DNA of 62,901 nt, the filler included, from Neoconidiobolus thromboides FSU 785 (taxonomy: Eukaryota > Fungi > Entomophthoromycota): NCBI GenBank assembly GCA_025603075.1. It is 6 parts of 6 records of this genome, joined end to end, with 100 filler letters (N's around TTAATTAATTAA, not from the genome) between each part and the next. Parts side by side here need not be neighbours in the genome. Positions count along the whole stretch, not along the records: positions 51,613 to 61,016 come from MU626663.1; 5 more parts are not named here. One strand, written 5' to 3'. Within the stretch, counting starts at the first letter, position 1. Each line of letters starts with the position of its first letter. The notes beneath the pieces are model-generated. The model did not search any database and was not told the DNA's origin. It saw nothing but the letters and a program-made list of their open reading frames with translations. The position numbers were made by a program, and so were the translations under genes. Below are positions 51,613-61,016 of the stretch, piece after piece.

Positions 51613-52727
51613 ATTAAAATCACTAAATTTCAATCTTTAAACATATCAATAATATTATTATGTAATATAGAATTATTAAAAGTAAAATAAATAAATAACA
51701 AATAATAATAATTAACAATAATTAACAATAATCAATAATTATCAATTTAATAGAAAAAATATCCGTTTGATTTGAATGTTTTATTAAAGTAAATAATATA
51801 TTAATATTTCATTTATATTATTAACATTAATTGAAGTGACTTTGATATTATAATCAAAAAGAAAGATATTAGTACTAATGAAGAAATTAATTTGTTTTTA
51901 AATAATACATTGATTGATGATAATTATTTAAATAATCATTATCAACAGAACGATGAATTATTTATTAAAATGAAAAATGTAATTCAACTAATAATCGATA
52001 AATTCTAACTATTTTATTTTTAGTATTTGGAATTATTATATAATTTAGATATAAGGTAATTAACTTATATAATTCAATAATAATATACTATTATTATAAT
52101 AGTTTAAGTGAATGTTGTCAAGAAATAATACAAATGTATTTCAAAGCATTAAGAAACTTACAATTAAATAAAAAGAAATGTATACTAAATCCACATGATT
52201 CATTATCTGTAAGGAATAATAAAAATAATATCAAATATAAATATTAAATATGAACATTAAATTCATTATGCATAGAGTTTAGCCAAAATCACTATTTTAA
52301 ATGCTAAATGTTTTCATAGAAAAATAGCAACTATTGAAGATGCTTTAATAAGGTAATTATATTTATTCTACTATTTCATTGTTATTTTATTGTTATTCTA
52401 TTTAACTTGTATTTAGTATAATTTACTTTGAAAATAATTTAAAAGTTAAATTCCATTATAAAGTTATCTACATTAAAAAGAATGATAACATTGGTAAATA
52501 AACATATATATATTATAATGGAACATTTATTAATATTTGTAGATTATAATATCTTTAATACAAATGATATAAATAATGAATTGTTATTTAGTTTACCTAT
52601 TAATAACATTTCTTTTTTATTAAAAAAAGAAGTACAATATTGGCTATCAAATAGTTTATTAAATAATTGTTATGATTATACAAAAACGGATCTAATTAAA
52701 CATCTCATTCATTTATTAAATCTATAA
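51613..52727 (+). CDS. 3' part of an MCM AAA-lid protein, MCMDC2-like (multi-exon, 5' truncated)
   Basis: Six GT-AG introns splice to ...NLDISLSECCQEIIQMYFKALRNLQ...SLSSLAKITILNAKCFHRKIATIEDALISIIYFENNLKVKF..., an MCM lid pattern. Confidence 0.6.
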
Positions 52728-52767
52728 CAAAATAAATTAAGTATTCAATGCTCGTTAATTATATTAT
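51613..52767 (+). repeat. Left arm of 1155-bp inverted repeat
   Basis: Line-by-line comparison with the reverse complement of 59862-61016 shows one mismatch (51871 A vs 60758 C on the + strand). Confidence 0.97.
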
Positions 52768-53126
52768 ATTATATTATATTATATTATCAATGATTTTTAT
52801 TTCTCAATAAAGTGGCTATAAATCAACTCATAAGTTTTATTTTCTCAGCTCGATCAAGTTGGATATTAGATTATCTAACAAAATGGTCAAAAATATTAAT
52901 CATTCTATTAATCATTTTAATTATGAAAATAGTTATTCTTTTAATTTTCAATCTTTATATTATATGAGAAGTGAACAAAATAAAATAAAAATGTTATCTC
53001 ATTAAAATAATTCAACCAATCAACTTTTTATCAACGTAACTTCCATCCTTTAATTTATCAAAAGAAAAAATAACTCAATTTTCCTTTTTTGTTCACTTAT
53101 TAAATTACAATTAATATAAAATATAA

Positions 53127-55566
53127 ATGAGTGTTGCAGCAACGAATGAGTAACATTAATTCAAATTTAATAATATTCAATAGTAATTATCAATATAGTT
53201 TATGGGTAGAAAAATATCGACCAGTAAACAAACTCGATTTAATTGGTAATAAAACATTAATAGATAATTTAATTATATTCTTAAAAACATGGTGAGTTTT
53301 ATCAAATACTTTTCATTTCACTCCTTTTTATCAATTTCAATTTCAATTTAAAAATATTTGTTATTTATAAATTCAGTTAATTTATTTTTTTCTTGTTTGT
53401 TAGGGACCCTAATGGCCTTGAAACCAAAGTCAATTTTCGCTCTGTGTTAATCAGTGGACCCCCAGGTATTGGAAAAACAAGTGCAGCTTACATAGCCTGT
53501 AAAGAAGCTGGTTACGAAGCTATTGAATTTAATGCTTCAGATACAAGATCAAAAAAAAGTATTGAACAAAAGATTAAAGAAATATTAAGTTGTAATTCTA
53601 TTTTATCATATTTTAAAAAAGATAAAACGAAGCAGGATGGGAAGGAAGGAGATAAGGATAAAAGTAAAGGTAGAAAAAAAGTACTGATTTTGGATGAAAT
53701 TGATGGTATGTCAGGTGGAGATAGAGGTGGTATTCAAGAAATTATTAAGTTATTAAAGACTACTAAGGTATTAATTATATTAATTAATGTATTTTTTAAT
53801 TAATAATAACTAATAATAATTAATTAATTAGGTACCAATTATTTGTATCTGTAATGACCGAAACTCAGTGAAAATTAAATCCTTAGCTAATCATTGTTTT
53901 GATTATCGATTTAGAAGGTAAATTTAATTCATATATTAAATAAATTAAGTAATATAACAATTAATTGTTGATTAATTAATTTCAATAGACCTACAGCTGC
54001 CCAAATAAGACCTTTGATTCAAAGAATCATTACTAAAGAAGGACTTGAATTATCTGAAAATGTATTAGAAACTTTAGTCGAAACCAGTCGTAATGATATT
54101 CGACAAATTATTAATTTATTATCAAGTTGGAGATTAACTAGTAAAAGTATGTCTAAAGAACAATCGAAAGAATTGTAAGTTATTTATTATAGGATAATCA
54201 ACAAGCTTTTAAGTCGAATTATTAATATTAATATCAATATTAAATTTAGTTCAAATATGATGAAAAAAAATGTATTATTAAATCCATTTGATATTGCTAG
54301 TCGTTATTTTAATAATGAAAATTATATGAATGATTCGTTCACTGATCGAATTGAGTTATATTTTCATGATTATCAATTGGCTCCGTTAATGGTACAAGTA
54401 AGTTTATTAAGACATTTATGAAATAGATAGAGAACAATACTTAATTTATACTAAAATAAATGGATAGGAAAATTATATATATTGTCAACCTAGTAGTTCA
54501 ACAATGAATTTTAAACAAAAAGAATTAGAAACATTAGATAAAATAGTCCATGCTTCTGAATTTATTTCTCAAGCAGATTTAATTGAAAAATCTATTCATA
54601 CGTAAGTAAAATTCAGTTTTATTAATTATCGATTAATTGATTAATAATTTAGTTCTCAAAACTGGGATTTAATGCCTTTACATGCTGCCTATTCTTGTGC
54701 AATTCCGTCTTATTTTATGCATGGTAAAATGAGTGATAGATATCGATTTCCAAGGTAAGTTAAATAATGATTGTCGCTGTTATTAAGTAATAGAATATTA
54801 ATAATTAATATCAATTAACAATGTTATTTTAGTTGGTTAGGACAGAACTCAAAAACAAATAAATATAATCGATTATTAAAACAAACTCATTTACATATGA
54901 AAGTGAAAATCTCAGGAGATAAAAATGAATTAAGACAAAATTATTTATTAACATTAAATAATAAATTGACTAAAGAACTAATTAAGGATGGGAATGTAAG
55001 TCAATTAATACTATTTTATCATTTTACTATTTTAAGTGAATCTTTTTTTATATTATTTTTTATTAATATATTAATTAAATTAGAATGGTATATCAAAAAC
55101 AATTCAATTGATGGATAATTATTATCTTGATAAAGAAGATTGGGACACATTAATAGATTTAGGTATTGGTTCTCAAGCTGGTAGTGAAATTCTAAAAGGC
55201 ATACCAACTAGTGTCAAATCAGCATTTACTAGAACGTATGTTTTGCTATACTACTTTATATTTAGAAAATCCAACTAACATTATTTTTATTTCTTTTATT
55301 TTAGTTACAATAAACAGCCTCATCCAACAATGTTGAATGTAGTTATTGCTTCGGTTAAGACTAAAAAAGAAGCCATACCAGATTTGGAGGACGTGTTGGG
55401 TGAAGGTGAATTGAATGATGAAGAGGAAGAAGAAGAAGAGGAAGAAGATGATGAGGATGTAATGAAAGATAAATTGATATCAAAAGCTAAAGAGGGAACT
55501 GCAGCTAAAAGAAAATCAAAGGCGGCAGGAACCAAGGCTACTCGTGGAAAAAAGGGTAAGAAATGA
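53127..55566 (+). CDS. RFC1: Replication factor C large subunit, apparently lacking the N-terminal BRCT region
   Basis: LWVEKYRP, GPPGIGKT, EFNASDTRS, DEIDGMSGGDRGG, ICICND, SQNWDLMPLHA, FPSWLGQNS, LRQNY, KSAFTRTYNK, acidic/basic tail. Confidence 0.93.
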
Positions 55567-55883
55567 AAGAAGATAAATGAAAAATAATGCAAGAATAATA
55601 ATAAATGAATTATGATTATGTTAATTGATATATTTTTGATTTTTTTTTGTGGACTTTTTTTGTTTTTTTTGATCACATTTTTAATATTGAAACCTTAAAA
55701 TTGTCAAAATAACATAAAATCCCATAATAACACTTCAATTTTCTAAATTGAACCAATTAAAACCATGAAATTCATAGCGTTAATTGTAGCAAAATTTAAT
55801 ATTCAAAATTACTTTTTATATAAAGAGAGCAACTAAGATAGTTAAATTTATAGATAAAAGAAAAAAAGAAAGAAAATACTAAA

Positions 55884-58059
55884 ATGTATAACGATTATGA
55901 AGATGATGATATTCCTTTAGAATTAGTATTAACACCTAATTTATATCCAAGTAATCTTGAGGAAGAAGAATATGGTAAGTAATTTTTTTCAAATATTATC
56001 CAGTTCTCACATTTGTCAAATGTTCTCATTAACCCATTTCTTTTTCCTCGTTTTTAGAGCATAGTCATTCGATTGAAAGTGTTAATTCGGCAGTTAACGG
56101 ATTACCAGAAGAAATTAAAAAATTTATCTTTAAATTTCATCATGCTTTAGTTGAAAATAATTATTATGAATTACAATACATTTATGAAAATTTATTCAAT
56201 AAACTAACTGAAAGATATTATGCTAAAAGCTCATGGCCAGATCCAGAGGTCGTGAGTCATTTAGTGAGTGATGGTAAGTTTTGATTTAAGAATTTCAAAA
56301 ATCATGCAAAGGAAATTTATTGATGATTTATGTACTTTTATGGAATAATTAATAATACTTTACTTTTATTTTTATAGATCAAGTATTTTTAACATTATAT
56401 CGTGAACTTTATTATCGTCATATTTACTCTAAATTACAACCAAGTATTGAACACCGTTTTCAATCATATGAAAATTATTGTGATTTATTTAATTATATTT
56501 TAAGTAAGCTAAAGTTTAATACTATTCTTTATATCCTCACATACAGTGTCAAACTATAGCTAAAATTATCATATTATGTTATTTTATATTAATTCTAATT
56601 ACTAATATTAATAGATTCAGATGGCCCAGTACCATTAGAATTACCTAACCAATGGTTATGGGATATTATTGATGAATTTATTTATCAATTTCAAACATTT
56701 TCAACATTTAGAAATAAAATCAAAAGTAAAACAGAAGAAGAGTTGATTTTGTTAAAAGAAAATCCACAAGTAAGTTTTTATTTTATTATGAAAGGTAAAT
56801 ATATTAATTATTATTATTTAGGTTTGGTCTTGTTATTCTGTTTTAAACGTTCTTTACTCTTTAATTCAAAAATCAAGTATTTATGAACATTTAGAAGCTT
56901 TAAAAAATGGAGAAGAACCAGGTTTACAATTGGAAGTGTAAGTTTAAAATGACTAAATTAATATTATACTGTTGTATTAATTTTATTTTAATAGAGAAGA
57001 AAAAGAAGATTATATCAATAAACCATTATATAAAATGTTAGGTTATTTCTCAATCATTGGATTACTTCGAGTTCATTGTTTATTAGGCAATTATACCATG
57101 GCCTTAAAAACTTTAGATAATGTAGATTTAAGTAAAAAATCACCATTTCATAGAGTTATTGCATGCCATGTAACTGTTTATTATTATATTGGATTTTGTT
57201 ATATGATGATGAGAAGATATGCAGATGCTATTCGTTCTTTTTCTCATATATTATCTTTTATGGCAAGAACTAAAATATTTCAAACCAAAAGTTATCAATT
57301 TGATCAGGTAAAGTAGAATATTTTTAATATATTTAACAATATAATTAATTAATATTTTTTATAATATTTTTTAATATTAGATGAATAAAAAAGTAGATCA
57401 AATGTATGCTTTATTAGCTATGTGCATCTCCTTATTCTCTAGTCGAGTTGATGAGCATATTCATAATACCCTTAAAGAAAAATATAGTGAACAAATGTCA
57501 TCTATGCGTACATTAGAATCGAATTTATCCACTTATGAAGAATTATATCTATATTCTTGTCCTAAATTTATCTCACCAACATTAACTAAAATGGATGAAT
57601 CAGAACAAAAACAATCAGCTACTCAATATCAATTAAGTATCTTTTTACAAGAAGTTAAACATCAATATCTTATTCCTACTTTAAGATCTTATCTTGCTTT
57701 ATATTCAACTTTATCTATTGAGAAGTTGGCAAGTTTCTTAAATATTGATAAAGATGAAGTTCGAAGACAATTATTAATATTAAAATTAAAGTCAAAACAA
57801 AAGAAGCAATTAAACGTAGGTAATTTATTGGATGGCCAATATACTTTAGCTAGTGATTTAGATTTTACAGTTAATAAGGTAAGGTTTAGTTTAATATAAA
57901 TTAAATTGCTAGAAATGTATATTAATTTCGTTTATCTATTATTAGGATATTATTATGGTAACAGAACATAAAATTGCTCGAAGATATGGAGATTGGTATA
58001 TTCGTAATATTTCGAAATTTGAAGATATGATTGATAGTTTAAAAATTCGTAAAAATTAA
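55884..58059 (+). CDS. EIF3L: Eukaryotic translation initiation factor 3 subunit L (multi-exon)
   Basis: [67 protein letters not shown]. Confidence 0.95.
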
Positions 58060-58392
58060 AGAGTAATTTTTTAATGAAATTTTGTAAGCTTGAACTTTCT
58101 TTCCTTTACATGCTTACCTCTTGATGTATGGATAGAATGAAATCTTTACTTTGAAAATAAAATAGTCAGTAAATGTGATGTTTTGTTTTTATTTTATTTT
58201 GAATATGTGTTCCTATTGGTACTAGTTGAAATAACTTTTTTTACTTTCATTGGTAGAATATTAAAATGGATGCTAATTATTGAATTAATGTGATTTTTTT
58301 TAAATCAATTGATGACAAAATAAAATCCTAATCTAACTATTCCATTTTATATTTTATTTTATATTTTATTTTATATTTTATTTTTATTTTAT

Positions 58393-59630
58393 TTATTCAA
58401 TTTTCTCTAAAGCCTTGAATAAGCCACTTAACATTTTTTGATTCTCATCTTCCGTACCTATCGTAGCTCTTAAACATCCTTGACAATGCATTTCATTACC
58501 TCTGTAACGAATAACAATCTTCAATTCATCCGCTAAGTATTTATAAACTTCTTTTGCTCTATTAGAGCATGGATTGTTATCCTTGTTTTTGACTTGCATT
58601 AATAAAAAATTAGCATCTGAAGTACCTAATAAAGTTAATTGAGGATGATCTGATACTTGTTTAATTAGAGATTGTTTAGATTCACTGATTTTAGAGATGT
58701 TATTGGAAACTGTAGATAAATTTATTGGCTCAAAAATTTCCATTCCTTTTTCAATAGTTAAACAAGAGATGTTATATGGTGCTTTAGTATTATTCATTAA
58801 TTGAATAATTTCCGTATGACTATAAGCAATACCTAATCTAATATAATAAATTCATCAATCAATCAACAAAATTTTAATTTGTATCCTAATAATTTTAATT
58901 TACCTAATTCCAGCAGCTGAAAAAGCTTTGGATAATGTCTGAGTTACAATCAAGTTAGGATATAAATTTAATAAATTTAAACAAGAATATTTAGAATCTA
59001 CAAAATCAATATAGGCTTCATCGACTACTACAATACCATTAAAAGAACTGTTTAATAGAATTTCAATATCATCTAAGTTTAATAAACTTCCAGTTGGATT
59101 ACCAGGATGGCAAAGGAAGATGACTTTAATTGTTGGAGTAGATGATAACATTTTTAATATCTAGATAAGAATTGAATTGTTAATATTAATATAAAATAAT
59201 AAAAATAACCTACATTATCTACATCCAATTGGAATTTCTCTTTTAATAAAGGACAAGTAACTACTTTAACATCATTAATTTTAGCACATACTTTGTACAT
59301 ACCATAAGTTGGTGGACAAATTAATATACTATCTTGACTTGGGATACAAAATATTCTTAATACTAAATCAATTACTTCATCCGATCCGACTCCTAAAAAT
59401 AGCTTCTTTACATTATCAATCTTCTTATATGACATTATCTTTTGCTTTAGTGATAATTGATAAGGATCGGGATATCGATTTAAACAAGCTGATGATAGAT
59501 TGAAAGGATAACTATTTTCATTGGCATCTAATAAGATACCTTCATTATAATCATCACGAGCACAACGATAAGGTTCTAAGGAGAGGATGTTGGGACGTAC
59601 AATAGATTTTAAGTTGAAATTAAGTGGCAT
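58393..59630 (-). CDS. HIS5: Histidinol-phosphate aminotransferase (3 exons)
   Basis: LEPYRCARDD, LDANEN, GVGSDEVID, CPPTYGMY, VVVDEAYIDF, TLSKAFSAAGIR, LRATIGT. Confidence 0.95.
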
Positions 59631-59861
59631 CTTTCTTTTATGTAGCTTTAAAGTTAAGGATAAATGAATAAGATTATAAATTAATTTTAGTTTTTATTGT
59701 TTCAAATTTTAAATCGCTAATTTTGATGACTCAATACAACTAATCATTTCAAGAATTATACCATCATCTTAATTTTTATCCTTAGTTAACTTACTCTTTA
59801 TTGGCCATTGATTATACTACCAATCAATTGAATTACTAATGGCTATAAATGGTAAATATTG

Positions 59862-61016
59862 ATAATATAATTAACGAGCATTGAATACTTAATTTATTTT
59901 GTTATAGATTTAATAAATGAATGAGATGTTTAATTAGATCCGTTTTTGTATAATCATAACAATTATTTAATAAACTATTTGATAGCCAATATTGTACTTC
60001 TTTTTTTAATAAAAAAGAAATGTTATTAATAGGTAAACTAAATAACAATTCATTATTTATATCATTTGTATTAAAGATATTATAATCTACAAATATTAAT
60101 AAATGTTCCATTATAATATATATATGTTTATTTACCAATGTTATCATTCTTTTTAATGTAGATAACTTTATAATGGAATTTAACTTTTAAATTATTTTCA
60201 AAGTAAATTATACTAAATACAAGTTAAATAGAATAACAATAAAATAACAATGAAATAGTAGAATAAATATAATTACCTTATTAAAGCATCTTCAATAGTT
60301 GCTATTTTTCTATGAAAACATTTAGCATTTAAAATAGTGATTTTGGCTAAACTCTATGCATAATGAATTTAATGTTCATATTTAATATTTATATTTGATA
60401 TTATTTTTATTATTCCTTACAGATAATGAATCATGTGGATTTAGTATACATTTCTTTTTATTTAATTGTAAGTTTCTTAATGCTTTGAAATACATTTGTA
60501 TTATTTCTTGACAACATTCACTTAAACTATTATAATAATAGTATATTATTATTGAATTATATAAGTTAATTACCTTATATCTAAATTATATAATAATTCC
60601 AAATACTAAAAATAAAATAGTTAGAATTTATCGATTATTAGTTGAATTACATTTTTCATTTTAATAAATAATTCATCGTTCTGTTGATAATGATTATTTA
60701 AATAATTATCATCAATCAATGTATTATTTAAAAACAAATTAATTTCTTCATTAGTACCAATATCTTTCTTTTTGATTATAATATCAAAGTCACTTCAATT
60801 AATGTTAATAATATAAATGAAATATTAATATATTATTTACTTTAATAAAACATTCAAATCAAACGGATATTTTTTCTATTAAATTGATAATTATTGATTA
60901 TTGTTAATTATTGTTAATTATTATTATTTGTTATTTATTTATTTTACTTTTAATAATTCTATATTACATAATAATATTATTGATATGTTTAAAGATTGAA
61001 ATTTAGTGATTTTAAT
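59862..61016 (-). repeat. Right arm of 1155-bp inverted repeat
   Basis: Reverse complement of 51613-52767 with one substitution. Confidence 0.97.
59902..61016 (-). CDS. Second copy of the MCMDC2-like 3' part
   Basis: Same exons and introns as the left copy; one Ser-to-Gly difference (AGT vs GGT). Confidence 0.6.

Follow-up and report, generated by a model that had tools for sequence, protein, structure and literature searches.

Do the two ends of scaffold MU626663.1 record a real inverted duplication in the genome of Neoconidiobolus thromboides FSU 785, a switch that inverts or amplifies the genes between them, or a product of sequencing and assembly? The scaffold belongs to the Joint Genome Institute (JGI) assembly GCA_025603075.1 of this cultured entomophthoralean fungus (Zoopagomycota). 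It lies complete, with its 9,404 bp, at positions 51613–61016 of the window, the 62,901-nt stretch of joined records whose coordinates are used throughout. Two kilobase-sized, near-identical inverted copies of the 3′ part of one gene are present in the deposited scaffold, and they enclose a 7.1-kb core carrying RFC1, eIF3L and HIS5. The reading favored here, with a probability of roughly 60%, is a real inverted duplication that is either very recent or has been homogenized by gene conversion. The confidence attached to this reading and to its three rivals was estimated independently for each, and the four values are not required to sum to 1.

Inverted-repeat arms

The arms are 1155 nt each and lie 7094 nt apart, and both extend to the scaffold ends (scaffold positions 1 and 9404):

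51613–52767, + strand: left arm, 3′ part of the orphan gene K502DRAFT_353592, exons E1–E8 reading inward
59862–61016, − strand: right arm, 3′ part of K502DRAFT_353595, reading inward
51871 (A, + strand) and 60758 (C on the + strand, G in arm orientation): sole substitution between the arms

A repeat search and direct comparison find 1154 of the 1155 positions identical. The scaffold ends are thus reverse complements with one mismatch and stop at the same repeat base, just as the preliminary description had it. The longest exact inverted match spans 896 nt, whereas in 30 first-order Markov, composition-matched simulations it averaged 16 nt and never exceeded 20 nt; the arm repeat is far beyond chance. 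The mismatch falls in arm exon 3 and changes AGT (Ser) on the left to GGT (Gly) on the right, and the deposited right-arm protein K502DRAFT_353595 likewise has Gly at this site. GC content is 16% in the arms and 24% in the core.

Each arm contains eight exons in consistent frames and seven introns of 45–72 nt, all of the form GTAA..AG (GT-AG), and the stop codons lie at 52725–52727 on the left and 59902–59904 on the right. The arms are therefore the inward-pointing 3′ part of one intron-containing gene, as first proposed. The same arm DNA has been annotated differently on the two sides:

51970–52727, + strand: K502DRAFT_353592 (KAI9290816.1, hypothetical protein), left arm, 161 aa, "complete"
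60956–59902, − strand: K502DRAFT_353595 (KAI9290820.1), right arm, 220 aa, partial

Judged by homology searches, the arm gene is an orphan without detectable relatives. Against 1.84 billion protein representatives (HMMER), the last arm exon has one true match, K502DRAFT_353592 at 100% identity, whose cluster partner is K502DRAFT_353595; the other two matches are unrelated repetitive proteins, and no third annotated copy of the exon is found in that collection. A word-index homology search returns nothing for the arm open reading frame (ORF) and only its own scaffold partner for the 220-aa K502DRAFT_353595. The gene has no Pfam family, the 220-aa model giving sub-threshold Pfam matches only. 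A scan of JGI metagenomes with the last arm exon yielded 596 pattern stretches, none of which was confirmed by tblastn; the exon lies 40 nt from the junction, so a contig with either junction would carry the exon too. Look-alikes of this exon in the ESM Atlas score at most 0.83, which is noise level. Exact-protein look-ups with the 81-aa arm ORF and a 172-aa eIF3L exon gave no match in a collection that holds spliced models rather than exon ORFs. AlphaFold2 modeling of K502DRAFT_353595 without an alignment predicts a helical protein, at an unusable mean pLDDT (predicted local distance difference test) of 37.

The multi-intron structure and the lack of a transposase or other Pfam domain point to a host gene and not to a mobile element, and this part of the preliminary description is supported as far as an orphan gene allows. 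With no third annotated last exon, the scaffold does not redundantly repeat some locus annotated in another part of the assembly, and a different contig must carry the 5′ part of the arm gene. Should the duplication really end where the scaffold does, its outer boundary would fall inside arm exon 1, and one copy would then be a truncated fragment, presumably without function.

Inner junctions

The inner boundary falls 40 nt past the arm-gene stop codon, at an (ATATT)n tract with five units on the left and one on the right, in agreement with the earlier placement at about 40 bp:

52761–52791, + strand: left inner junction, (ATATT)5 at 52761–52785 and ATCAAT at 52786–52791, then unique GATTTT
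59858–59868, + strand: right inner junction, ATTGAT at 59858–59863 and a single AATAT unit at 59864–59868

The left boundary reads TTAATT(ATATT)5ATCAAT before GATTTT, and the right, in arm orientation, reads TTAATT(ATATT)1ATCAAT before ATTTACC. Homology resumes past the (ATATT) tract for six bases, ATCAAT, on both sides; allowing a 20-nt gap (four repeat units), arm homology runs on to 59858. The two junctions have 14 nt in common, ATTATATTATCAAT, followed by complete divergence, and local alignment of the inner flanks beyond them is no better than that of shuffles. Neither junction contains adapter-like or GC-rich foreign sequence. Both lie in normal-sized intergenic DNA and leave the three core genes unbroken: the arm stop codon is 400 nt from the RFC1 ATG on one side and 272 nt from the HIS5 ATG on the other, and the spacing between RFC1 and eIF3L is 318 nt.

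An 11-mer, TGGCTATAAAT, occurs exactly twice, against 0.02 expected, and forms a direct repeat that brackets the core within the long inverted repeat:

52813–52823, + strand: first direct copy of TGGCTATAAAT, just inside the left junction
59840–59850, + strand: second direct copy of TGGCTATAAAT, 8–18 nt inside the right junction

No further similarity surrounds the two copies. The pair could be a chance occurrence (about 0.03 by estimate), a TATA-like motif or a rearrangement footprint.

A probable recent inverted duplication

Under the favored reading, the final ~1.16 kb of the orphan gene, which takes in exons, introns and ~60 nt of 3′ flank, would be present as two opposed copies that lie upstream of RFC1 and HIS5, respectively, and bracket the 7.1-kb RFC1-eIF3L-HIS5 block. 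We infer that both junctions lie in one chromosome. The 14-nt microhomology would mark the inner breakpoint, and because it adjoins the (ATATT)n tract, the copy may have been placed by a microhomology-mediated event, either a replication template switch or repair of the microhomology-mediated end-joining type. The tract itself may be native to one target site rather than a product of slippage after duplication. Divergence of 0.09% (one substitution), together with the microsatellite length difference, suggests that the duplication is very recent or has been kept homogeneous by gene conversion. An assembler would extend the core into the repeat on both sides and no further, which would give the scaffold its order of repeat, core and inverted repeat. 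Such a repeat–unique–inverted repeat structure ending at the same base is graph-assembler output for two collapsed inverted copies with differing outer flanks. If the repeat is real, the core may occasionally be inverted by non-allelic homologous recombination as a passive by-product, since 1.15 kb at 99.9% identity can support homologous recombination.

Three features favor a real pair of copies beyond the repeat itself. The arms are not byte-identical: with one substitution, five units of ATATT against one and a shared ATCAAT beyond the tract, they have the look of two slightly diverged copies, and two read-outs of one template would not differ in this way unless the site were heterozygous. 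The intergenic position of both junctions, which spares the genes, is expected of a rearrangement filtered by selection. Only ~14% of this compact scaffold is intergenic, and we therefore estimate that two random chimeric breakpoints would both fall in intergenic DNA in about 2% of cases. The third feature is the brevity of the 14-nt overlap, together with the absence of adapter-like sequence at either junction. The failure to find a third annotated last exon among the protein representatives also counts in favor of this reading.

If real, the closest known kind is an ordinary dispersed long inverted repeat, or segmental inverted duplication. In Candida albicans, ORF-containing inverted repeats of 1.7–3.2 kb with more than 98% identity and spacers of 4–100 kb are documented to drive inversions of 4–103 kb, and long inverted repeats mediate inversions, copy-number variation and loss of heterozygosity (Todd et al. 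2019, PMC6591007). The arms of MU626663.1 resemble these repeats in being derived from a host gene and kilobase-sized, with identity above 98–99% and a spacer in the range of a few to tens of kilobases, and inversion by non-allelic homologous recombination would be expected of them as well. Unlike the C. albicans repeats, they comprise the 3′ part of a gene only, with the outer flanks off the scaffold. Both orientations and the breakpoints were verified in C. albicans by polymerase chain reaction (PCR) and sequencing, whereas MU626663.1 is known from the deposited scaffold alone.

Several observations weigh against a real duplication. Because the repeat occupies the scaffold up to the last base at either end, no outer flank is included, let alone two different ones; the scaffold is also short and isolated, and both junctions are known from this one assembly. 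A heterozygous site, and not divergence between copies, could account for the one A/G difference. The sequencing platform matters here as well. The N. thromboides genome is described as having 13.5% repeats and 8,867 genes in PMC11105155, which cites Chang et al. 2022 (PMC9391592) for FSU 785. The methods of PMC9391592 give PacBio/Falcon assembly for every JGI genome in that study except two, a set that may include FSU 785. Reads of ~10 kb should carry an assembly across a real 1.15-kb repeat. If the assembly is a long-read one, a read-sized orphan contig with symmetric ends would suggest an aberrant molecule, such as a fold-back, a template-switch product or the snap-back of a strand that truly carries the repeat.

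Possible assembly artefact or merged haplotypes

These observations point to the rival that the preliminary description had itself flagged, namely misassembly. The arm gene would then be single-copy, and one inner junction, on either the HIS5 or the RFC1 side, would have been made in vitro or in the assembly graph, which we consider unlikely. The false junction could come from a template-switch or fold-back library molecule, a chimeric long read or a mis-join, with the true neighbor of the core on another contig. The scaffold does share the form of graph-assembler contigs in which both ends stop at the same repeat coordinate, and this property of assembly is silent on whether the second copy is real. 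It also has the arm–loop–inverted-arm layout of strand-displacement and template-switch chimeras, in which synthesis jumps to the opposite strand a few kilobases back at a microhomology, and microhomology beside an AT-rich microsatellite is a signature of in-vitro template switching too. Strand-displacement amplification yields inverted chimeras of nearby sequences more often than any other class (Lasken & Stockwell 2007, as summarized in preprint 10.64898/2026.06.11.730069). However, such chimeras are documented for amplified DNA, PMC9391592 describes no whole-genome amplification for these genomes, the strain is cultured, one base and the microsatellite distinguish the arms, and the breakpoints spare the genes, all of which set the scaffold apart from such chimeras. 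Two particular sources were rejected. A PacBio read with a missed SMRTbell adapter would be a spacer-less palindrome and would lack the 7.1-kb unique core. As for a mis-join in the assembly graph by way of the microsatellite, just one ATATT unit is present at the right junction, and a shared stretch of 14 nt cannot create a spurious de Bruijn link at k ≥ 61; values of k = 61–97 were used for the Illumina genomes in PMC9391592, the likely source paper.

The two arms might instead be alleles. In a diploid, or in a mixture of nuclei, each haplotype would carry one arm gene and the 7.1-kb core in opposed orientation, and the assembly would have merged a heterozygous inversion by stitching the arm to each end of the core. 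Vegetative diploidy has been reported in Entomophthoromycotina (PMC9457484), and one substitution plus a microsatellite length difference resembles allelic variation. This account is nevertheless distinctly improbable: it needs an inversion without a pre-existing inverted repeat at the breakpoints, two alternative neighbors at each core end should stop the contig there rather than 1155 nt into both arms, and the scaffold contains no second flank sequence. The structure behind the proposal of a recent or gene-converted inverted duplication holds throughout, and such a duplication stands as the best reading; it is not proven, since only read-level data could separate it from an artefact.

Programmed switching, amplification and mobile elements

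A further possibility is that the repeats serve regulated inversion or amplification of the RFC1-eIF3L-HIS5 cassette, making the locus a programmed flip-flop switch or a palindromic amplicon. The geometry fits: ~1.2-kb near-identical inverted repeats surround a segment of a few kilobases, as in flip-flop mating-type (MAT) loci and around the C. albicans repeats. In methylotrophic yeasts, flip-flop loci have MATa and MATalpha beside the two repeat copies, one position being silenced by proximity to a centromere or telomere. Like the loci of Ogataea polymorpha and Komagataella phaffii, whose repeats are ~2 kb long, MU626663.1 has inverted repeats flanking a segment, here with 1155-nt arms. Unlike them, it carries RFC1, eIF3L, HIS5 and the orphan gene and no MAT genes, and it is not a member of that group. 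No recombinase, integrase, transposase or mating-type (HMG, homeodomain) domain occurs in any exon or ORF scanned against Pfam, which also distinguishes the locus from the 2-micron FLP/FRT system and bacterial invertons. The 9.4-kb piece contains no regulatory gene, no tRNA and no Rfam family. The cargo consists of constitutive housekeeping genes. Both the RFC1 promoter and that of HIS5 are located within the unique core, and each would be carried along with its gene, so inversion would change no promoter–gene relation on the scaffold and provides no on/off logic. Palindromic or fold-back amplification finds no support in the extent of the repeat: the 1155-nt arms alone are duplicated, and the 7.1-kb core is single-copy on the scaffold. 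Neither the flip-flop switching nor the amplification raised in the preliminary description is supported by these findings, and a programmed event of either kind appears extremely improbable.

Without any such program, the RFC1-eIF3L-HIS5 block might still flip among coenocytic nuclei, or the symmetric ends might be the true ends or the palindromic junction of a 9.4-kb amplicon; both are very improbable. The amplicon variant, a discrete inverted-repeat-ended or a tandem or circular 9.4-kb molecule carrying essential genes, is the more exotic of the two. The locus also differs from terminal inverted repeat (TIR) elements and composite transposons, as its arms are an eight-exon spliced gene, its cargo is three housekeeping genes and no transposase is present.

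Core genes

The core contains three protein-coding genes:

53127–55566, + strand: RFC1, large subunit of replication factor C, 570-aa deposited model
55884–58059, + strand: eIF3L (eIF3 subunit L), 542-aa deposited model with a Paf67 domain
58393–59630, − strand: HIS5, histidinol-phosphate aminotransferase, 372-aa deposited model in three exons

Domain matches bear out the gene content first described, and all three genes are complete. RFC1 matches the AAA, AAA_lid_RFC1 and RFC1 C-terminal domains, and its best NCBIfam match is the replication factor C large subunit. eIF3L matches Paf67 at E values of 4e-50 and 5e-44. The best match to an eIF3L fragment is in Massospora cicadina, where a synteny check found no neighboring genes called within ±10 kb; this match, like the low GC and the many short introns, is in keeping with an entomophthoralean source. 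The three HIS5 exons tile positions 1–345 of the 349 in hisC (TIGR01141).

RFC1 starts 13 residues before RFC box II (LWVEKYRP), and no BRCT or other N-terminal region is encoded. Yeast and animal RFC1 carry an N-terminal region of roughly 300 aa that includes a BRCT domain. Truncation of the 5′ end by the left junction was considered and rejected: the 360 nt upstream of exon 1 far exceed the introns found here (45–72 nt) and have no BRCT coding potential. From its sequence context the short RFC1 looks native, and it would be either a lineage-specific short form or part of a split gene. The region encoding the RFC1 C-terminal tail (55420–55457) consists of a GAA/GAG (Glu/Asp) run followed by a Lys-rich stretch and is the most GC-rich on the scaffold (about 32%).

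A perfect TGACTCA site (Gcn4/AP-1 type) lies at 59727–59733, ~100 nt upstream of the HIS5 start; the piece contains two such sites, against 0.7 expected. A TGACTCA upstream of HIS5 is what general amino-acid control would predict for a histidine-biosynthesis gene.

Significance

Neither a real duplication nor an artefact points to a new mechanism or a regulatory switch. As an artefact, the structure would expose a mis-join in a publicly available reference scaffold with two essential genes on it. Were flipping or an amplicon to prove true, Entomophthoromycotina would have its first described locus with a dynamic structure. If the duplication is real, as favored here, a compact, repeat-poor zygomycete genome offers a clean and very young case of inverted segmental duplication bounded by microhomology, and the locus could serve for measuring inversion mediated by repeats in a coenocytic fungus.

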